Shown here: piece after piece, positions 2,717-17,400 of the stretch
Layout: each line of letters begins with the position of its first letter
Numbering within the stretch: the stretch's first letter is position 1
NCBI GenBank assembly: GCA_047495785.1
Contig: JBLDXI010000012.1
Coordinates: 682,001-746,000 of the forward strand
Reading direction: 5' to 3'
Source of the DNA: Lepidodermella squamata
Lineage: Eukaryota > Animalia > Gastrotricha
Length of the DNA: 64,000 nt
Notes under the pieces: model-generated
Databases searched by the model: none
The model's input: the letters and a program-made list of their open reading frames with translations, nothing else
Told to the model about the DNA's origin: nothing
Translations under genes and position numbers: made by a program

Positions 2717-4179
2717 ATGTCTCTCCTACGGTCGGCTACGGGGTCGACTCGTTCGTTGTTGAAGGGTATTTTCGGCTCGAAATGCACATGTGCTGAACCT
2801 CTAGCTGCTATGGCGACGATTTTGCAACAACGGCGTAACTTGATGATTCAAGAACACATGGCCATGCGTTTGCTCGAAGAGCATGACATCCCGATACCTC
2901 GTTTTCAACTCGCTCGAACGCCCGAGGAGGCCGAAGCCTCCGCGAGACAGCTTACCAGAGTAACGAAATCGACTGATACTGTGGTGAAAGCCCAAGTTTT
3001 GGCCGGCGGGCGTGGTAAGGGTCATTTCAGCAGTGGTCTCAAGGGCGGTGTAAAGGTGGTCTTCAGCCCGGAGGAGGCGAAGGCTTTAGCTTCGAAAATG
3101 ATCGGCCACCGTATTTTCACTAAGCAGACTGGCAAGGAGGGTCGGCCCTGCAACGACGTAATGATGCAGCAACGTCTATACTCTCGGCGTGAAACCTTTT
3201 TCGCCATCACTATGGACCGGGCTCTTCAAGGCCCGGTTATGATTGCCTGTGCTTCCGGTGGTGGGAATATTGAAGAATTGGCGATTGAAAATCCCGACAT
3301 GTTGCTGCGAGAGCCTATCGATATGGCGACTGGCATCAAGCAGGAACAGGCGAAGAAAGTGGCGCAGTTTCTCGGCTTCCCGGAGGCTGTGCACGAGCAG
3401 GTCGCTGCGATTGCCACGAAATTGTACGATATGTACATGAAGTACGACTGCACCCTGCTGGAAATTAACCCGTTGGCCGAGGATAATACTGGCAAGGTCT
3501 ACTGTATGGATTGCAAAATCAATTTCGACGATAACGCCAAATTCCGCCAGCGTCAGATTTTCGCCCTCCAAGATTGGAGCCAGGAGGACGACCGCGACTC
3601 TCGCGCCGCTCAGGCCGATTTGAATTACATCGGCCTCGACGGTTCTATCGGCTGCCTGGGTAAGGAATAATCGCTATTTTAAAAATTCCTCCTTAAAATT
3701 TGCAAAATTTTATAATAAAAAAATATATTTTTAAATTTTTTACAGTTAATGGTGCTGGTTTGGCTATGGCGACAATGGATATCATCAAGCTTCACAACGG
3801 CGAGCCTGCCAACTTCTTGGACGTAGGCGGCAGTGCGACGGAGGATCAAGTGACGGAAGCTTTCAAACTGATCACCTCCGACCGTCGCGTCAACGCGATT
3901 ATGGTCAACATTTTCGGCGGCATCATGCGTTGTGACGTCATCGCAAAGGGCATCGTGCACGCCGCGCGCATGCTCCACATCAACGTGCCAATCGTTGTGC
4001 GCCTCCAGGGCACCCGGGTCGAGGACGCGAAAGCCGTGATCGCCGACAGCGGTCTGCGCATCCTGTCGTGTGACGATCTGGACGACGCGGCTCGCTTGTG
4101 CGTGAAACTCGCCAACATCGTCGCCCTCGCCAAGGAAGCGTCGATCGACGTCAAATTCGAAATGCCGACGCACCTTTGA
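2717..4179 (+). CDS. SUCLA2: Succinyl-CoA ligase beta subunit, mitochondrial, probably ADP-forming (exons 2717-3659, 3746-4179)
   Basis: Arg/Ser-rich presequence ending QQRRNL; motifs [31 protein letters not shown]^[38 protein letters not shown]. Confidence 0.95.
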
Positions 4180-4679
4180 ACGCACGCGAATCTAGGTTAT
4201 ATTGGCACCAGTAGTTTTTTTTAGCAATCAACTCTCCTTGACCTAAACTTACAACTTCGACATAACACTGCGAGCGGTCGGAAATTCGGACCCGGAACGA
4301 CGCCTCATGCACGTTATCTTTGTTGCTTATTTTTTCGTTTTTATCGAGACTTTAAAAAAACGTACCAGTGAAGACCGTCCCAAAATACCCGCTTGAATTG
4401 TGAGGCATGTTTCTGTCTAATCAAACGATGAATGCATTTTGATTTTCTCCGTGATCGGAGAGCATGTTTGTATTATAAGATCGATAATAATATAATTTTA
4501 GTAGTGCCGTGTTCAAATTTTTCACCCAGTGTTACATCAATGCCTGCCTCTACTATATCATTCGTACATATATTTATTATACTATCTGATCGAAAGAAAT
4601 TATCCGTACGTTTTTCGTTCAAAAAATGTTGGAAATAAAAGGAGAAATATTGTTGAGCGGAAAAATCGCGTCTTTGTTT

Positions 4680-7611
4680 TCACTCGAGTTCGTAATTTTG
4701 ATGCTTCAGCTTTTCGTTGACGCTTCGACTCAGATTTGATCGGGTTGAATCCGATAGACAAACGCCGCTGGTAAACTGATCGATCACCGAAGAAATCAGA
4801 GCCGTAGCTCGTTGGCGATGGTTTTCAGAGCTATTTGGGCTCAGAGATTTCCGACTGAAACTTTTCTTGAAGAAAGACTTTTTCTCCTTTTTGGCCGGGG
4901 TGTTAGAGGGATGATCGAGTAGAAAAGGAAGCATCAGGTCGATGCAAAGCCGGCAGCTCTCGATTACTCGTTGCTCCTCGCCGTTCTGTTTCAATTTGGT
5001 CGTCGGAGTTAGAGATAACACATCAGCGAGAACCTCCATCGAATAGCCGGGTTCTTTGTAGATTTGAGGCTTAAATTCAAAATATTAAAACGCAATATCC
5101 GTTCAACGTAACGAACATACCTCCTGATCGCTGTAATAGGCCGCCAATTCAGCTGCATTGAAACGGCCGAGCCATGACAGCCAGAAATCCTCGTTCCACC
5201 AGGCTTCCAGTGATTTTAGACGATGATGCAGATATTGCGGTTTTTCCATTGGCGACGGGCGATATGATATGTTGGAAACGGCAGCTAGAAGCGCGAATGC
5301 AATGCCATTTTCATCCGACCGAGGCTCTTTCTCGGTTAATTTGCTGATCAGCCCGATCAGATACTCGAAGTTTGCTTGGTTAATGCGGCCGTTATTAGTC
5401 AGTGACCTGCGCGAAAGTTCAGCGCAAAAATCGCGACGAATCGTCGGCGAATCCAGCTTAAAAAAAAGTGAAATGTATTGCAAGAATTTATAGAAGATTT
5501 AAAACCTACCAGTATCGAGTCCAATAATCGCTTGTCATTGTTACTGATAGGATCACCCTTTTCGTTGAAAAGGCGGTCAAATTGAGTCGTAAGGAGCCTC
5601 ACAATAGGACTAGGGGCCTGCGACATCATTAAATCGACTATTCGGCAATTGCTACAAAAAGTTCAATGAGAGATTTAGTAGTCTTACCTGGTACTCGACG
5701 TTGAAGACCTCCGCCAACATCGACTCCGATAACAGCGTTGGTGTAGTCAACTTCTTGTTCTTGTTCGAGGAAATCGACAATTTCCAAGCAGTTCGGCTTG
5801 GGAAACTGGAGGAGGGCTGAAGCCGACGTTGACAACAGCGCTAGAAGCAGTTCGCGTTTGTCAGCCGAGTCGCTGTCTACATAGATAAAAGAATAAAATC
5901 GAATAATTTTCACAAATATAATCACCATCTAGACTGGAAACGGTATCCAAGACAAGTAATCGTTGAGAAATAACGCTCAGTGAATTCTCGGAGCCTTTAG
6001 CGACAAGTTCGTCGAACAAGTCTACCTCGCGAAAAGGATGCCATCTTTCCTATATTTCAAACGCATGTGGCTGGTTCCAGGGTTTACAATAAAATAGTAA
6101 CAAACGATGAAAAATTGATTGAAAAAGCTATCCAATAGCTTAATTGTCAGGCTTTTTTTATCGTTGATCTTCAAGCCGTGTTCGCCCAAAAAGTGGGAGA
6201 CATCGAAGTAGACTCGTGGTTGCGGGAAAAACCTGACTGCAATCATGGATCGCCGATAACGGCTGAACATCAACGCGTACAGTCGCAGAAAGCATGCTCG
6301 TAATCGCATCTCGATTCGCTTCGAACGCGAATCGATGCGAGATAGCCCCGTCCAGTCCGCGATGAATTCATCAGAAGTGAAAACCGAGTTCAAATCCTGC
6401 CAGAAAATTACAATAAATGGAACATAAATGATAGCGGGAACCTACACTGAGTAACTGTTCCCCCAGCATGCCGTCAAAATTAAGGTAGTCTTCGAGAGCT
6501 GAAGTTGAATAAATTCATAAAAAATGCATCGAGTTTCCTTCTATCGAAATCTGACCTGATTGCGGAATTTTTACACTTCGTTTTTCAAGATCCACCAGAA
6601 CGATACCGTTACGATCGAAAACTGAATCGGAACCAGCAGGGGCATCTGTTGGCAGGTAACTCGTACCTATGCAAAAAATCGTCGGGGCTTCCAGAAGATC
6701 ATCCAACACTCGACGGCCTACAGCTGGGGCGTAAACGTAATTGTAAGGGAACGGCCAGAGCAGTGCCATGAGCGACTCGCAGCACATCGTAACCAGCGCG
6801 AGGTCCAGGCCATAAATCACCACTTTCATTTCGTTGAGCAAGCAGCGCACGACTTCGACGACAAAATTCACGCCGAGCAGGTGAAACAGGCGATAGACGC
6901 CGAGATTCGTTCGAGGGAACGACATTGGTGCATGGGCTTGGATGGGTATCGAATGGCCGAAACCGAAATCAATCTGGCGATAACGGCCTGGCATCGGAAC
7001 TCGCATGTTGTTGACCAACAGTGCGATAGCTCGATTCAGATAGCTCACATTGGCTCGTTCAATCATGAATTTCGAATAGAAGAATTCTTACAAAATTTCA
7101 AATAAAAAAGATATTGATTAACTAACACAAAATTATCTTTCTTACCAAGACACTGTTTGAAGAAGTCAGATAAGTTCAGCTTCGACAAAAATACCAAAAA
7201 TTTCGGCACGAAAATGTGTGAATTGAAGCTGATACTTCGCTCGACTTGATGAGCCTCGTGGAACGTCAAAAATGAAACGTGAATCTTCCTGCCTTCAGGC
7301 ATCGTTGTTAGGGTAATCGCGTGGAATGAAGGTGGATCAGGAGCGTCACTTGCACGGTAACCATCACGTCTGCAAAATTCCATCTTAATCAAGCTAGTGA
7401 TTGCCTTAGTCAGCCTATTGGCCTCTGGATCGCTATCGTCATCAGGCGGCGGCGGTGGTGGGTATTGGAAGAGAACTTCGGGATCTACAAGCTCAGCGCC
7501 TGGGCCGAGTTTTTCGTCGCATTCTCTCGGGTTGAGCTTGTAATAATACCCAACGATAGCAAACGCATCAGCTACAAACGGCTCGGTTAGAATCGAGCTT
7601 TGAAGACTCAT
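4680..7611 (-). CDS. Divergent SBF1/SBF2 (MTMR5/13)-like protein A: uDENN-cDENN-dDENN plus SBF2 domain only; multi-exon
   Basis: VADAFAIVGY..FCRRDGY..PPSFHAITLT (uDENN); CCESLMALLWPFPYNYVYAP..LLEAPTIFCIG..VLVDLE (cDENN); RLRACFLRLYALMFSRYR..VRFFPQPRVYFDVSHFLGEHGL (SBF-type dDENN); SDENGIAFALL..WWNEDFW (SBF2 domain). Internal exon borders are approximate. Confidence 0.75.
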
Positions 7612-8478
7612 GTTCAATAGTTTCTTATAGCAAAAGCTATGAAAAAGCTGGCTGATAATTTGGATCTGCTAGTTTTAATCGCGTGTTCTTTCAGAGCTGC
7701 CACGCGTCCGGCTTTTGGCAAGACTTGGAAAATCAGCAATGAAACAGCGACGTTTTTGCTTGTAATAACAACATAAATAATGAACAGGGTGAAATTGCCT
7801 ACAATAAAACTAGGCGCCGACTAGGTCACCAGGCGTTATATGAGGTGTAATTACACTTCGTCACTCGTTTCTTGTTTTCACCTGTCGGCCTTTTTGATCA
7901 TCAATATTAATAATATTTTTTGCCGATTTTCCATTCATCATTTCAGGTCTTAATTTACCACGCGAACTATAGCCTCTGAGACAATAATATGGCTGGTAGG
8001 TATTGGATGTTGCTTGGTGCGGTGTCACTTTCTTTGTGTTGATACAAATGGCCTGCGAAAATATTATTACCTGAGAAATGAGTGACTAAATTTAGCTCGG
8101 AAAATAGTTGTGTGTGCTGTAGACCCCGTCGCCGCCGGATAATGATGCTATATTTAAGCGCCGCGCGTCATTGTAAATGGTTTGTGGCAACACAATATTC
8201 AAATTGTGTACGACGCATTTCGGCCGAGCCCGGTGATGAGCGTGCGATTGTTATTATAGGTAGCGGCATATAGGTAGCTCTAGCACGCTTTCTGCGATCG
8301 AGTCGCAAGCATGTCGGCCTTTGTTGTTGTTTTTGTTATGTGTTGAAATTTCGATATAACATTGTCGCTGGAAATATAAAGTGAACAGCGCTGCGCCATG
8401 TACGACATGCCTTCACATATTATATAAAATTGCCACTGCGAATTTTTATTTAAAAAGTTTTGCCTCAACTAGAAAATT

Positions 8479-11463
8479 ATGAGTTGTTTGAGTAGCTCAG
8501 GGCGCTTAGCCCGGGCTTTTGCGATTATTGGCTTCGAAGACGATAAATTGCGCTCTGCTTTGGAATTTAACATCGGCTCAGCTGATCGGGACGATTTGGC
8601 TAGCGTGGTCCATCCTAATGTTGTTTTTCTCTATCCAAACGAAGAGGCAGATGAAATGCAACCGGTACTTGACACTATCATTGAAACGCGATTCAGCCGG
8701 CCTTATGGCTATCAAGTGCTTGAGTCGCCGAAAAACCCCGATTTCCACACAATTCGTCTAACCGACCGAAAATGCCGGGTAACTTACGTTTCGATCTTCA
8801 CGTTTTACGAAGCTGCTTCAGATGGAAAGAGCTCGGCATATATTCCCAAATTTCTAGCAATAATTTCCGATGTGCAAATGTCAGATTTATTTCGAACTTG
8901 TTTGAGTACGTTATTTTTTAAAGTTAAAACTTGCGACCTTCAATAATTTACGTTTCAGGACTTATTTACGAAAAAATGGCGTTGGAACAAGCTGATATCG
9001 ATTTCCTTAACCACGCAATAGCCAACATTGTGCATTATAAACTTCCACCCGCTGGTTTTTCAAGCTCGCTCAGCCTCGGTTTTGGCGACCCGTTAACCGT
9101 TCATACCTCTAGCGCTAAATGCTTACCGAAAACGGGTCTTACTGTCAGTAATCTCGTCAGGGTCCTTGGCCCAGAAAACACGGCGAAGTCGTTCTTCTGC
9201 TTACTTCACCAACTGCAGATCACGATGTACTCGGCCGACGTCAGCTTCCTGACAGATTCCTGCGAAGCCCTGCTCGCGCTTTTATACCCCTTCGAATACT
9301 ATTTCATTTACGCCCCGGTTCAGACGAAACGTTGCTTGGAGCGGCATAAAATTCTCGAAAATCCGACTCCGTTTTTCGTCGGCATTTGCGAGCCTCCGGA
9401 AGAAGTTATTACTCCGGAAGTTGCCGAGCGGGTCGTGCTGATCGACCTTGATAAGCGGACTGTCCGCCTTCCCCCTACGTGTAAGACATTTTCAAATTGC
9501 GAAGTAGCATAAATTTATATCGTCTTTCTAGTTCCGGATGAGATAAAAGATATAGACACGAGGCTGTGCAATCAATTGGTAGACGACTTGCGAGCTGTGA
9601 TGCATTCGAGAGAATTTACGATGGCTCACCACGCCTTCGATACCAACTTGAAGTATTTGAACTTGATAGAGAAGCGGCTAAGGGCTTGTTTCTTGAAATT
9701 TCACGCCGCTCTGATCTGTGATTACCGGCAATCACTCTCGGCCGTTCGCTTCAATCCGAAGCCGAGAATATTCTTCGATAAAGCCCATTTCTTCGGACGA
9801 AGACGGCTACGTTATCAGCCGAATGGGACCTCGCAAAATAGCTTTTTGAGCAATTTTGTAGATATTTTTCTGGATCAGATTCTCAAGGTCAGTGAGCGTT
9901 TGCTCAGGATTTATTTTTAAAATATTTTTCGAACTTGTAGGATCGAAAACTACCTGTGCGAGAGGCTGATTTTTTCGACGAATTATGCGCGCTTTTATGC
10001 GGAATGACCGGCGAGAAAATCGACTCCATTCAACTTGTTGATGATATTGCTAAATATCTTATCGAAAATGACAAACTAGCAGGTTTGAAAGGCTTTAAAT
10101 TTTCTAACGTCATAATTTTGTTTTTATTATTAGTTTCGGAAAATAGTCCTCCGAACGTGGCCGAACGCTATTTAGCATGCCGGAAAACGCGCCCGTTTCC
10201 GTCTCCAAATCGAACCCGGATAGCGAAATTTTCTTACGAGATGAACTATCATATAAATAATCTAAGCTCCAGCTTCGTTCTTGTGTCACCCAATGCTTCG
10301 GGTGTTCACAATATCAGCACAGCTTCGAACAGCACGGTTACCCCGTCGCCTGCAGCGACCAGCCTACGACACGGCAGAATAATGGCTGGGACGAGGCCTC
10401 GGTTCAACGCCGAATCTCTGTCAAACAGCCAGATTGACGACCGAATGGCTATTTACGGTGCTTACATCGCATGCATTTTCGCTCGCGATCTTAAAAAGGC
10501 GAAATCGCTTATGACTGAAATCCCGCGAAAAATCGAGGCTGAAAGCGTTGAGGTTCGTCGACGAATCCCGCGGAAGCTTCATCAGTACTGCCGCAAGTTG
10601 ACGCAAGTGAACCACAAGCAGTTCTGGGCATTGGCTCAGCTGGTTCGGTGTTTGTTGATCCACGAATCGCCATGCGATGAAAACGGTATTGCAAGCTCGC
10701 TTATTCCTGTGCTTCAGAACATTCAAATGATCGAAAATCGGCGGTTCCTCTACACCACTGTTCAGGTAATATTCTTCAATAATTGGTTCCGTATATTATA
10801 ACAAGTTTCCCCTAGCGTCTTCCTGTATGGCGAAATGAGTATTTTTGGGTCGCTCTAGCTTGTCGTCACATTGCGGCTGACATCGCGGCTCGCTACGATA
10901 AGAGCAAGGAGATCAATCTTGACGACGAGCCGTGCCATTCAGTCGATGTTCTAGCCACATTTATGGAAAAAGAAGTGCCCAGCCGGCCTGATGATGAAGC
11001 TAGAGAAGAGGCTATAGCTGCAACATGGTGCAAACACTTTGCCGATGTCATGATCGCGTTTCTCATTGAATACGACACTTCTGATGAGAAACCGAACGCT
11101 AGCAATCGAGGCAAAGCTAACGATTCTGGCATTAGTATCGAAATGGAGGAGTACGCCTATGCCTTGAATGCTCGGCATCGCTCTGATGGCGTCTGCAGTC
11201 CTAGCGTTGAATATCACGTGAATTTCGCGGTCGAAGAGATGTGTAAAGAAGTCGACCTGCCCACTCCTTACCTGGAGGCTATGAAACTAGAAATTCCTGA
11301 CAAAATAACCGAGCAGCTACGCTATGTTAAAATGCTTCAGCGTGGCAGCAGCGAACCTCGTCAAACGCCATCATCAGGAGTTTGGCCTCAACAGGCTCTG
11401 CTGTCGGTGAAATCAAAGCGATCTCCCCTAATACTGAGCTGCAATAAACAAACCGGAAATTAA
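8479..11463 (+). CDS. Divergent SBF1/SBF2 (MTMR5/13)-like protein B: DENN module plus SBF2 domain only; multi-exon
   Basis: GRLARAFAIIGF (cf. the SBF N-terminus RLADYF), PDFHTIRLTD..FTFYE, SCEALLALLYPFEYYFIYAP, RLRACFLKFHA..VRFNPKPRIFFDKAHFFG, CDENGIASSLIP, VWRNEYFW, EEAIAATWCKHFADVMIAFL. Stop at 11463 followed by AATAAA near 11497. Confidence 0.78.
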
Positions 11464-11742
11464 TGAAAAAGAACTACCAATTTTGTACCTGAAAGTAATA
11501 AAATGATCGACAATTAAATAAATTTATTTGACAATTTACAAGAATCTTTCTTTGATGACCGATAAAGGAACCATGTTTCACTTTATTTAATAATCGAATA
11601 ATGATCAGCAAATATAAAATATAAACTTAAAAGCTTCGAATCAAAGCCCTCGTGAGTCATTAAAAGCCATGTTAAAATCGATGGAAATCAATCAATCAAA
11701 AAAATGAAATATTGAATAAAATAAGTAGTTCAAAAGTCAGGC

Positions 11743-12628
11743 CTAGTTCTTCTTTTCGTCCGCAGGTACTTCGAAAATGCCGCACATCAGATTGGCAGGA
11801 ACCGCTCGATCTAAAATGGCACAATTATTCGAATGTTAATAAAGTCAGTCAACTCTTACCGAATTGCTTCGGATACGGCAGGTTGAGGTTATTCATAATT
11901 TCAACGAACTGCTCTTTCGACTTGGTTAACCGGGGATTGAAGCGTTTCTCCTCGCGAACGCTCGTAACAGTACGACCCTTGTAGTCATGGGCCGGGTATA
12001 GCGAAGTATCGTCGGGTAAGCTGAGAATGTGGTCCCAAACGTTTTTGTACAGCATCTCCGGATGTCCTATTCGATCGAGCAATATATCATTTCAATAGTT
12101 TTCTAAATGGGTCCGAACCTTGTTGGAAATCTGTTCGACCACATCCTCTTATTAGCAAAGCATCCCCAGTGAAAGCCATTTTCGCTTCTTTCAGGTAATA
12201 GGTAACACAGCCGTCTGTATGGCCAGGCGTTTCACGAACCTCAAGACTCTAAAAACGATCAATTAGCCGCGAAAACTGAGCAGTTTGAGCAAACAAACAA
12301 ATTTTCCGAACGGAATTTTGTCATCGTGCGAGATTTGCCAATCGGCCTTTGCTTTAGCATTGGCGCTGATCACACTTTTACACGAAGGGTATCGCTGTTT
12401 CAATTTTCCAGTTCCAGTCACGTGGTCCGCGTGAAGGTGAGTATTCAAAGCATAAACCAGTTTCAATTCAAGCGAATCGATTTGCTCAGCATCACGCTCT
12501 TCCATCTCCATAACCGGATCAATGATAATTGCTTCGCGAGTGGTCATATCAGCGAGAAGGTAGGTGTAAGTTGACGACTCGCGCTCGAAAAGTTGACGAA
12601 ACAACAAATTTTCGCATGAAAGAGCCAT
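11743..12628 (-). CDS. ETHE1: Persulfide dioxygenase ETHE1 paralogue b, no N-terminal presequence (exons 12628-12299, 12248-12119, 12066-11860, 11810-11743)
   Basis: [78 protein letters not shown]. Confidence 0.93.
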
Positions 12629-12769
12629 TGAAGCAAGTAGAAAAAAATAAAATAAATTAAAACTTAAATCCTATCAATGAATTTAATAACGAATAAACGT
12701 TGAGCGAAAAAGAGGAAAATTCAACGGTTAATCATTCACCAACTGTCTGTAGATAAGTTACATTGACGT

Positions 12770-13657
12770 TCAATTTTCGGCAACCTCAAAAATTCCACAC
12801 ATCATATTGGCAGGGTGTGCTCGGTCGAGCTGCTTTGGGTAGGGTAAATTCAAATTGTCCATAATTTTGATGAATTCGCCCTTGGTTTTCGTAAGACGAG
12901 GGTTCAGTCGTTTCTCCTCGCAGACCGTAGTCACAGTTCTCCCCTTGTAGTCATGCGCCGGATACAACAGTGTTTCGTCTGGTAAGCTAAAAATGTGTTG
13001 CCAAACCGAGTCAAACAGCGTTGATGGGTTGCCATCCTATAAACTCAGATCTAATACATCTGAATAGCCTAAATAATTTGAAATTCACTTGAAAGTCCGT
13101 TCTACCACAGCCTCGAATTAGCAGGGCATCACCGGTGAATGCCATTTTGTGACTAGGCAGGTGAAATGTAACACATCCATTCGTATGGCCAGGTGTTTCC
13201 CTGACATCCAACTCCTGCAAATTTGCAATGAGTTAAACTAATTTCAAAGCTATTTTCATTCAATTTTTACAAATTTTCCGAATGAAATCTTGTCAGCGTG
13301 ATTGACGAGAATGTCAGCTTTCGCTGTCGAATTTTTGCCAATTACACTCTTGCAGCCATGGCTCGCGTATCTAGCCTTCAGTTTGCCTGTTCCGGTAACG
13401 TGGTCAGCATGACAGTGAGTGTTGATTGCATATCGAAGCTTCAGCCCAAGAGAGTCAATTTGCTCGGCATCTCGCTCTTCCGTCTCAAGAACCGGATCGA
13501 TTAAAATCGCCTCACGTGTCTCAGTGCAAGCCAACAAATAGGTGTAAGTGCTAGATTCACGCTCGAAAAGCTGCCGAAAAATCAATCCACCAGCATTATT
13601 TGCTACCATATTAGACAGCGCGCGACGAGGAACAGCGAGTAAATTCAACAGATTCAT
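12770..13657 (-). CDS. ETHE1: Persulfide dioxygenase ETHE1 paralogue a, with putative mitochondrial presequence (exons 13657-13271, 13214-13089, 13036-12770)
   Basis: Leader [16 protein letters not shown]; [51 protein letters not shown]. Confidence 0.93.
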
Positions 13658-14383
13658 ACAAAAATAAACTATACCTATCGACCAATTTACAAAAATTATT
13701 GGACATTTGAAAGTGAACTAAATTCGGTCAAAAAAACTTCAATGTGGTTTATATAAGTAGTACGAGAAAAAACGCTGCAGTATGGCAACACTCTTTTTAC
13801 TGTTGAAACGCTTTTCATAAGTAATCATGTAGTAGTAATAGTAGTAGTAGTAGCATAGTAGCGTGGTAGAAGAGGGCGCAGACTGTTCACGTTGATAGAG
13901 AAATAAATGTTTGTGCGGCGATTTTGCGGAGAAAATTATACATTTAGTCGCCATATCAAAGGACAAAAAGGCACAATAAATTGAAACAATTAATACTCGA
14001 TCTGTCTACCGTTATGCTACTGTTTCTGACAAATAAATTATCGTCATTTCACATATTTTGCTACATTTATTTAAGGTTGCTGAAAGTGGCAGATGGCTAG
14101 GTCAAGAGTGACAAGATCGTTCCAGCGGGATTTGTCGCGTATTCGTTTTCATACAACTTAACAGACCGGGTTGCAAATCCTTGCGCCTCAAAAATCATCA
14201 AGGTAAATGGGATGAAACAAAAATAGTTCAATTATTGACAGTGTGTAATCATGTAATTGAAACTCAAATTATTTTAGCATTTTCGTCATCGTCAATCATA
14301 AAACGACGTGGCAATTACAGGAAGACCTGTCAAGCGTTTGTTCAGTCTCTGTTAGCAGTCACTTTTGCATGGGTTGTTAGCAA

Positions 14384-15552
14384 TTAGCTTTGCCATTTAT
14401 ATTCAGGATGGTGTTCCAACATCGAAATCATGTCTTTCGGTTCCTTTTCCCGCTTGCAAATCTTGTGCACGGCTGTGAAGAGGGGGAACTCGTCAGTCAT
14501 CTTCCTGCCGTCTAAAATGACGAAAACTTCCTCCGCAGTGCCGGGGCCTGAAAATCGAAGGATTATATCACAAGAGAACAAAAAAACTTGCTACATACCT
14601 TGCAGCAGTTGTCCACCTAACATCTCTTTCTCGAGCTCCTCGAGGGTTTTCCCAGTTTCCGCAAAAGCGGCGGCCACCTTCCGGTTTCGACCACCGTAGC
14701 AAGTAGTCACGAGGTCGGCAACGCCGCAGCTCTGCAGGAAAGTTCGCATGTTGGTACCAGGATAGAAAAGTTCAACAAAACGGATCATTTCCATTAAACC
14801 CAGACGAATGATGGCGGCTTTTGTATTGTTACCGAACTTGAGGCCATCGCTGTTTCGAAATACGAAAATTAAATTAATTTTCATGAATATCGACAGTCAA
14901 CTCACCAAAAACCAGCTCCGCAGGCGACAATGTTTTTCAGGGCACCGCAAAGTTCAACACCGGCTACATCAGGCACGACCGTGATGCGGAAATAGTCGAT
15001 ATCGAACAATTTCTTGAACAGCTGGCCGTGCGAGAAATATTTCGAACCGACTGTCGCCTCGCAGAAGCTCTCCTGGGCAACTTCGTTCGCGATATTTGCA
15101 CCCATAAGAACAGACATCGGGATTCCGAGTGACTCAGTGATCATTTCAGAAATGAGTTCCAGTCGATCAGGTCTGGCGATGACACCCTTGATAAGACTGA
15201 TACCGAGCGCGCTCAGAGGGATTTTGCCCTTCAGAGTCGCGCAGGTCCTAGCAACGAACTGATGAGGGATAACGAAAACGAGGATAGTCGCGTCCTTCAC
15301 TGCATCGACGAGCTCGGGAACAGCATAAACGTTGGTAGGCAGTTTGATATCGGGGAGGTATTTGACATTCTCGTGTTCAGTATTGATAATCTCAGTCAGC
15401 TTTCTACCATTCACCATTTCTTCGAAAACCCACATATTTACGCGTTCATCGAATAAATCTGAATGGCGCCTGGTGTTCGCTCCAACAATTCGGCAGATGG
15501 CAGAACCCCAATTGCCAGAACCAATGATGCAAACTTTGTGACGAGTAGTCAT
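14384..15552 (-). CDS. GPD1: Glycerol-3-phosphate dehydrogenase [NAD+], cytosolic (exons 15552-14906, 14849-14599, 14547-14384)
   Basis: [44 protein letters not shown]^[38 protein letters not shown]1 versus GPD1L cannot be resolved. Confidence 0.95.
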
Positions 15553-15893
15553 TGTTCTTTAACAAAAATAAACAACTAAGGTTGGAAAAAAACGCATTTG
15601 AAGTAAATTTTAGTGTGCTAAGAACGTAAAAGAGATACAACGCCAGGCTGCATATATACGAGCATATGAATTTCTCACGTTTTTTCTCGGTTTCAAACCA
15701 GAATGTCACACAGAGCGCAACGAAGAACAGATTTTTTGTGTGATGGCTAAATATACCGTTCGAACATAACACAGTAATTATAAATGAGCAGCTCGGTTAT
15801 GTAGCAATTTGCAAATGACTCGATTAATATGGCTGGTTAGTTTTCTTAAAACATTTTTCGATCACAGATGCGTCACAGTCATTGTGGACATCC

Positions 15894-17400
<1,507 letters not shown>

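Follow-up and report, generated by a model that had tools for sequence, protein, structure and literature searches.

Within a 64,000-nucleotide window of the genome of the gastrotrich Lepidodermella squamata (assembly GCA_047495785.1, contig JBLDXI010000012.1, positions 682,001 to 746,000 of the forward strand; all positions below are those of this whole stretch), the segment at 4680–11463 carries two head-to-head genes related to SBF1/SBF2 (MTMR5/MTMR13). SBF1 and SBF2 are the Charcot-Marie-Tooth 4B genes. Both are intact, spliced, expressed and under purifying selection. The 5′ half of the animal's own SBF (MTMR5/13-type) gene was duplicated at the DNA level, the duplicate was cut at the border ahead of the PH-GRAM domain, and the truncated gene was duplicated again before the split from a related organism. 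Each product consists of a tripartite DENN module and a whole, all-helical SBF2 domain, without the PH-GRAM, pseudophosphatase, coiled-coil and PH parts. The two proteins are probably stand-alone Rab regulators by now, and most likely exchange factors. They would serve a Rab21/Rab28/Rab35-like GTPase, acting apart from the myotubularin phosphatidylinositol 3-phosphate (PI3P) phosphatase complex and from the lipid-binding domains of canonical SBF.

Among the six-frame open reading frames (ORFs) of positions 4000–12500, two runs of exon-like frames point apart. Gene models were assembled from the contig joints of a public run, X1, together with checks of reading frame and GT..AG ends, and X1 was compared with a second public run containing the locus, X2, over positions 5650–11640. 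In X1, short GT..AG intervals are missing from the contigs; those of the right-hand gene lie on the plus strand and those of the left-hand gene on the minus strand (as CT..AC). The X1 depth is about zero over 7650–8450. Since each gene loses its introns in its own orientation and intergenic depth is near zero, X1 behaves as RNA. The X2 contigs run through the introns, and this run behaves as DNA; one of them spans 7454–9874, which covers the head-to-head junction. The original prediction, made from the sequence alone, had called two divergent multi-exon genes with start codons at 7611 (minus strand) and 8479 (plus strand); X1 splicing and the reading frames agree with it, and its stops at 4680 and 11463 are correct. 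The minus gene has nine exons and encodes 835 residues, the plus gene has six and encodes 908, and the introns of both measure 49–59 nt. All five plus-gene introns occur in X1 (8906–8958, 9481–9531, 9888–9940, 10083–10133 and 10766–10815, the last supported by loose ends), as do six of the eight in the minus gene (7087–7145, 6499–6555, 6397–6445, 6050–6105, 5877–5925 and 5638–5687); those at 5457–5509 and 5070–5120 are predictions from frame, GT..AG ends and size. The X1 contig of the minus gene extends to 7636. The features of the segment are as follows.

7146–7611, minus strand: minus-gene exon 1, start codon (ATG 7611) and uDENN region (uDENN 17.7 bits, under the cut-off)
6556–7086, minus strand: minus-gene exon 2, core DENN domain (Pfam DENN 80.6 bits; flanking introns in X1)
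6106–6498, minus strand: minus-gene exons 3–4 (6446–6498, 6106–6396), dDENN-equivalent region with the RLRACFL...VRF motif (aligns with canonical SBF; introns in X1)
5510–6049, minus strand: minus-gene exons 5–7 (5926–6049, 5688–5876, 5510–5637), linker between dDENN and SBF2 (introns 5877–5925 and 5638–5687 in X1)
5121–5456, minus strand: minus-gene exon 8, SBF2 domain with DENGIA and W.NE.FW motifs (Pfam SBF2 25.5 bits)
4680–5069, minus strand: minus-gene exon 9, C-terminal SBF2 helices, polybasic stretch KKSFFKKSFSRKS (about 4842–4892) and stop at 4680 (aligns before the PH-GRAM of canonical SBF)
7612–8478, no strand: intergenic region of 867 bp between the start codons (X1 about zero over 7650–8450; X2 contig 7454–9874 across it)
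8479–8905, plus strand: plus-gene exon 1, start codon and uDENN region (uDENN 13.9 bits, under the cut-off; intron 8906–8958 in X1)
8959–9480, plus strand: plus-gene exon 2, core DENN domain (Pfam DENN 85.6 bits)
9532–10082, plus strand: plus-gene exons 3–4 (9532–9887, 9941–10082), dDENN-equivalent region and start of the linker (three flanking or internal introns in X1)
10134–10765, plus strand: plus-gene exon 5, disordered linker rich in Ser, Thr, Pro and Asn, and first half of SBF2 (Pfam SBF2 29.5 bits)
10816–11463, plus strand: plus-gene exon 6, second half of SBF2, tail helices and a double stop (canonical alignment up to KPKI..P.LL; X1 depth 0 over 11450–11640)

Domain content was assessed by an exon-by-exon Pfam scan with cut-offs of 23.4 bits for DENN, 22.1 bits for SBF2 (PF12335) and 22.3 bits for uDENN. 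DENN and SBF2 score above these values in both genes, and beyond DENN, SBF2 and uDENN no other Pfam model scores in either. Exon 1 is collinear with the N-terminus of canonical SBF in the minus gene (27% identity, E 5e-9) and in the plus gene (E 2e-8). The uDENN, DENN and dDENN regions are in fact all collinear with canonical SBFs, hence both proteins have the tripartite N-terminal DENN module, and in both it is followed by the SBF2 domain that marks the SBF subfamily. An alignment with 15 canonical SBFs (A3) showed that the two proteins span the entire helical region past the Pfam SBF2 model; the plus protein terminates on KPKI..P.LL, the motif that opens PH-GRAM, and the minus protein about 45 residues before that point, within the last helix. 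No PH-GRAM is present in either protein, as evidenced by these end points and by the absence of GRAM (PF02893) from contig C12, on which the window lies. Nor does either contain the pseudophosphatase domain, the coiled coil or PH: the last exons end in stops, and Myotub-related (PF06602) was likewise absent from contig C12.

SBF2 domains occur at three loci of the genome (121 Mb, 151 contigs), namely the pair and a canonical SBF on contig C15, in which uDENN, DENN, SBF2, a weak GRAM match and Myotub-related were identified. Fission of a single gene into halves is rejected by this intact copy; the check for a full-length SBF elsewhere in the genome, which had been suggested in order to tell fission from duplication, thus decides for duplication. 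The own-genome search revealed no further truncated copy, and no third, KIAA0513-like SBF2 locus was found in the genome. In the ranking of that search the canonical SBF is the third-best match (E 1e-36), and other DENN loci reach 1e-9 or weaker. The minus and plus proteins share 29% identity over 801 aligned columns (E 2e-89), in keeping with the earlier remark that the copies are very divergent from each other, and both are 35% identical to the animal's own canonical SBF in the DENN module and 24–27% in SBF2.

A maximum-likelihood tree was computed from 26 rows and 860 columns (IQ-TREE, LG+C20 with posterior mean site frequencies, PMSF), with four other DENN families as outgroup. The minus gene groups with the plus gene and its ortholog from the related organism, as (minus,(plus,ortholog)), with support of 100/100, and this clade is sister to the pair formed by the own SBF and the relative's SBF (100/99), inside the SBF clade. 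Enforcing a clade of all canonical SBFs costs 17.9 log-likelihood units (approximately unbiased, AU, test p=0.004; the constraint group was named after the tree had been seen). Long-branch attraction would not give this placement, since the truncated genes join short branches and not the outgroup. Membership of another DENN family is hence rejected by the tree, the AU test and the own-genome ranking, and the phylogeny that had been proposed as a check identifies the genes as SBF paralogs with the other DENN families as outgroups.

The canonical gene has three intron positions in common with the minus and the plus gene, one following FKSCL/FRTCL/FKQCL, one following FFPQFLQ/FLDQILK/FFNQFFI and one within the linker. 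The plus-gene intron after FLDQILK coincides with a canonical SBF intron. These common positions imply duplication at the DNA level, and a retrocopy origin is rejected on the same ground. All three truncated proteins, the ortholog included, have in common six substitutions at sites nearly invariant in canonical SBFs; because of these and of the same end point, the sequences favour a single truncation event followed by the plus/minus duplication. Both events predate the split from the related organism. After the first duplication, the stem branch of the truncated clade accumulated 1.08 substitutions per site, and the path between the plus gene and its ortholog is about twice that between the two canonical genes (0.91 vs 0.47). 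The copies had been described as old or fast-evolving: both apply, given a plus/minus split that precedes the species split and these path lengths.

Relatives were sought among 1.84 billion representative proteins with a profile built from the two DENN exons. The sole match below E 1e-30 was P0001 (231 bits), an exon-level ORF on metagenome contigs L024/L025 from a locus that encodes the plus-gene ortholog. P0002 came next with 107 bits, followed by canonical SBFs and members of other DENN families, and no other close relative of the truncated genes was found among these proteins. The plus gene is 57%, 59% and 47% identical to the ortholog over three exons, and the ortholog stops where the plus gene stops, with no GRAM or myotubularin domain downstream on its contigs. 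P0002 represents exon 1 of a canonical SBF gene (DENN; SBF2 and Myotub-related; C1 and PH), and one contig of its locus comes from the same sample as L025. This canonical SBF of the relative is 61–68% identical to that of L. squamata, falling to 44% in the N-terminal (uDENN) region. On its contigs (L026–L028) a C1 domain lies ahead of the C-terminal PH, and the gene is without the first of the introns common to the own canonical SBF and both truncated genes. Every other match that reaches SBF2 was judged canonical because at least 314 residues remain beyond the alignment.

Further searches were made for proteins of the same kind. Queried with P0151, the SBF2 exon of the ortholog, a word-based protein search returned only the query, and another with the canonical SBF2 region against architectures of 344–1094 residues and KIAA0513 scored none, a weak test given its word and length limits. 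A scan of Joint Genome Institute (JGI) metagenomes with a DENN alignment (A2) gave 93 pattern matches, none of them confirmed, and an ESM Atlas feature search with the last plus exon gave uninformative scores of at most 0.85. An Atlas cluster holds chordate entries of 710 residues named 'SET binding factor 2' with DENN and SBF2 only; they may represent isoforms or fragments, and short products of this DENN-SBF2 kind may thus occur elsewhere too. We found no paper describing separate genes of DENN and SBF2-only architecture. Relative to current sampling, the gene type appears to be confined to this lineage, consistent with the lineage-specific family of stand-alone SBF-DENN proteins that had been suggested, since its sole close relative is the plus-gene ortholog of the related organism.

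The AlphaFold model of P0151, the 434-residue product of the ortholog's last exon, was computed with alignment A3. It displays a disordered linker at residues 22–116 (predicted local distance difference test score, pLDDT, below 50) and a confident all-helical domain at about 118–428, with 164 residues at pLDDT of at least 90. Because this domain takes in the tail helices beyond the Pfam SBF2 boundary, the truncation in the predicted structure respects a domain border and keeps the helical domain whole. Sequence search identified no solved structure related to the SBF2 regions, and Foldseek with the SBF2 model gave no match in the PDB at E <= 0.001. The best Z score of a wide fold search (VIA) was 8.3, to generic helical repeats, which is background for helical models. 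With the plus DENN exon, sequence search recovered DENND1B (3tw8, E 3.6e-6) as the nearest and only solved structure. An Atlas fold search returned an arthropod DENN cluster of 873 residues in which the helices after DENN match the SBF2 model (P0151 93–405) on superposition, with a template-modelling (TM) score of 0.44, and a feature search of the Atlas returned clusters mixing Pfam SBF2 with Death_MADD. There is hence a hint from the models that SBF2-like helical domains may follow DENN in other families.

Within the last exon of the minus gene, positions 4842–4892 (minus strand) encode a MARCKS-effector-like polybasic stretch that is rich in Phe and Ser (KKEKKSFFKKSFSRKS). Canonical SBFs have an acidic or Ser-rich loop at this site. 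The stretch may be a membrane anchor that replaces the lost PH-type domains.

Exonic strain differences, between the window and the X1 and X2 contigs, were used to examine selection. Since 36 of the 40 listed differences are synonymous and four are non-synonymous, both genes are under strong purifying selection in all domains, SBF2 included. Two indels, at 11109 and 11112, sum to a net change of 3 nt. Compared with its ortholog, the plus gene has a non-synonymous divergence (dN) of 0.42; the synonymous divergence (dS) is saturated, so only dN is usable.

Indirect evidence for exchange activity comes from work on known SBF proteins and from conserved sites. Residues 1–508 of Drosophila Sbf alone bind Rab21 and catalyze nucleotide exchange in vitro, and both halves are required in vivo (PMC3395661). 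The DENN domains of MTMR5/13 are Rab guanine-nucleotide exchange factors (GEFs) acting on Rab28 (PMC2958468), and Sbf also works with Rab35 (PMC6829657). Canonical SBFs conserve 59 sites of the DENN module at a level of at least 90%; of these, the plus protein retains 41 and the minus protein 38. The strong divergence, both from SBF and between the copies, suggests that Rab specificity or regulation may have changed.

Several points weigh against stand-alone exchange factors. The Pfam uDENN scores lie below the cut-off in both genes, dDENN has no Pfam match in either in the exon-wise scan, and the read comparison follows the minus gene from its start down to 5650, about two thirds of its length. 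About one third of the nearly invariant canonical DENN sites are replaced, among them an L-P pair (264–265 of the plus protein) and histidine 286. Six of the substitutions are common to the three truncated proteins, and nucleotide exchange may have changed or disappeared as a result. Membrane recruitment would, moreover, need to work without PH-GRAM and PH. The same residues speak for the principal rival, in which the pair would act as Rab-binding decoys or as regulators that do not catalyze exchange: with the DENN fold kept, they would bind GDP-Rab or another SBF partner and antagonise or buffer canonical SBF. The lost residues include L264-P265, H286, E160 and S236, several of the losses recur in all three proteins, and this fits the idea, as does the long stem branch that followed the duplication. 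We nevertheless regard it as unlikely, for the proteins retain two thirds of the conserved DENN sites together with the SBF-type dDENN motif, and purifying selection extends over the whole length, SBF2 included. A decoy for the active myotubularin partner is impossible because the pseudophosphatase domain and the coiled coil are absent.

It is less probable still, and in our judgement improbable, that the pair has been neofunctionalised into scaffolds with a role no longer related to Rab. The very low identity to any SBF (23–35%) would be expected of such proteins, and the private polybasic Phe/Ser stretch of the minus protein and the long disordered linker of the plus protein could be read in the same way; the domain order and the conserved DENN and SBF2 cores have, however, outlasted species separation. 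Decay into pseudogenes, or into transcribed relics left by a partial duplication, as the truncated architecture and strong divergence might suggest, is very improbable and was rejected in view of intact frames of 835 and 908 codons, precise splicing, the 36:4 synonymous excess and an intact ortholog with the same end point at a dN of 0.42. Equally remote is the notion that they are 5′ parts of longer genes with GRAM/myotubularin exons elsewhere, or an assembly artefact: although the read comparison reaches down to 5650 in the minus gene, ahead of its 3′ end, the last exons of both genes and of the ortholog end in stops, no GRAM or Myotub-related domain occurs on contig C12 or downstream of the ortholog, X1 depth is zero after 11450, the nearest genes lie 390–500 bp off on the opposite strand, and X2, a separate DNA run, crosses the junction between the two genes. 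Onward splicing is hence rejected, and the earlier claim that both genes end after SBF2, with neighbours leaving no room for more, is borne out, as is the expectation, to be checked with Pfam, of DENN and SBF2 without GRAM or Myotub-related.

The 867-bp intergenic region is a candidate shared promoter. A low-depth X2 contig links 7112 to 8443 through 19 other letters, with a motif containing GCGGGAAATT, and comparable loose ends occur at 7091 and 8462; the joint may reflect repeated sequence or structural variation in the intergenic region. One X1 contig has 22 foreign letters before 8537, within plus exon 1. There is no AG acceptor at this site and no copy of the letters in the window, so this is probably a chimeric contig rather than a spliced leader. 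In the related organism, TIP49, GPDH and ETHE1 adjoin the ortholog and match window positions 11847–17361, the DENN gene faces the opposite way with respect to TIP49-GPDH-ETHE1 from its counterpart in the window, and no minus-gene ortholog was found within 7 kb of the plus ortholog. The head-to-head layout is therefore not conserved there, since the plus ortholog has the other orientation and stands without an adjacent minus partner. The two ETHE1 copies in the window (11847–13550) match a single ETHE1 region (L024:4652–5290), so their tandem duplication seems to be private to this species.

Compared with SBF1/SBF2 and Drosophila Sbf, the truncated genes are related by common descent (tree and AU test) and have in common the uDENN-DENN-dDENN order, SBF2, the helices up to the PH-GRAM border and the three introns. 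They differ in being without PH-GRAM, pseudophosphatase domain, coiled coil and PH, in size (about 840–910 vs about 1700–2000 residues), in their 23–35% identity and in the replacement of about one third of the SBF-invariant DENN sites. The vertebrate protein KIAA0513 has a stand-alone Pfam SBF2 domain (bioRxiv 10.1101/2020.06.18.158949). Compared by description, it likewise keeps the SBF2 helical domain apart from the myotubularin half; unlike our genes, which carry the full DENN module and so fall outside the KIAA0513-like class of SBF2 without it, it has about 400 residues and no complete DENN module. The closest functional analogy is found in DENND1-type DENN Rab GEFs, which have a DENN module without a phosphatase-like half, although DENND1 (3tw8, the DENND1B-Rab35 structure) belongs to another DENN family, an outgroup in the tree, and is without the SBF2 helical domain.

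These genes bear on the mutual dependence of the Rab-GEF half and the myotubularin-scaffold half in SBF1/SBF2, as selection has preserved DENN and a complete SBF2 in two paralogs and in two species in the absence of the other half. The interest is moderate, given that the genes are confined to one obscure lineage and that duplicates commonly lose domains. To our knowledge, no function is known for the SBF2 domain. Since its constraint persists without the myotubularin half, the sequences suggest that SBF2 may serve the DENN module and not the phosphatase-like part. The truncated genes are compact natural constructs for biochemistry. A bolder proposal, which we put forward tentatively and consider doubtful, is that DENN and SBF2 form an autonomous unit, released here as two specialised stand-alone Rab regulators that have new Rab specificities or act as decoys against canonical SBF, the minus protein with a MARCKS-like polybasic anchor instead of the lost PH-type domains. 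If true, the pair would amount to a separation-of-function experiment done by nature on the MTMR5/13 halves.

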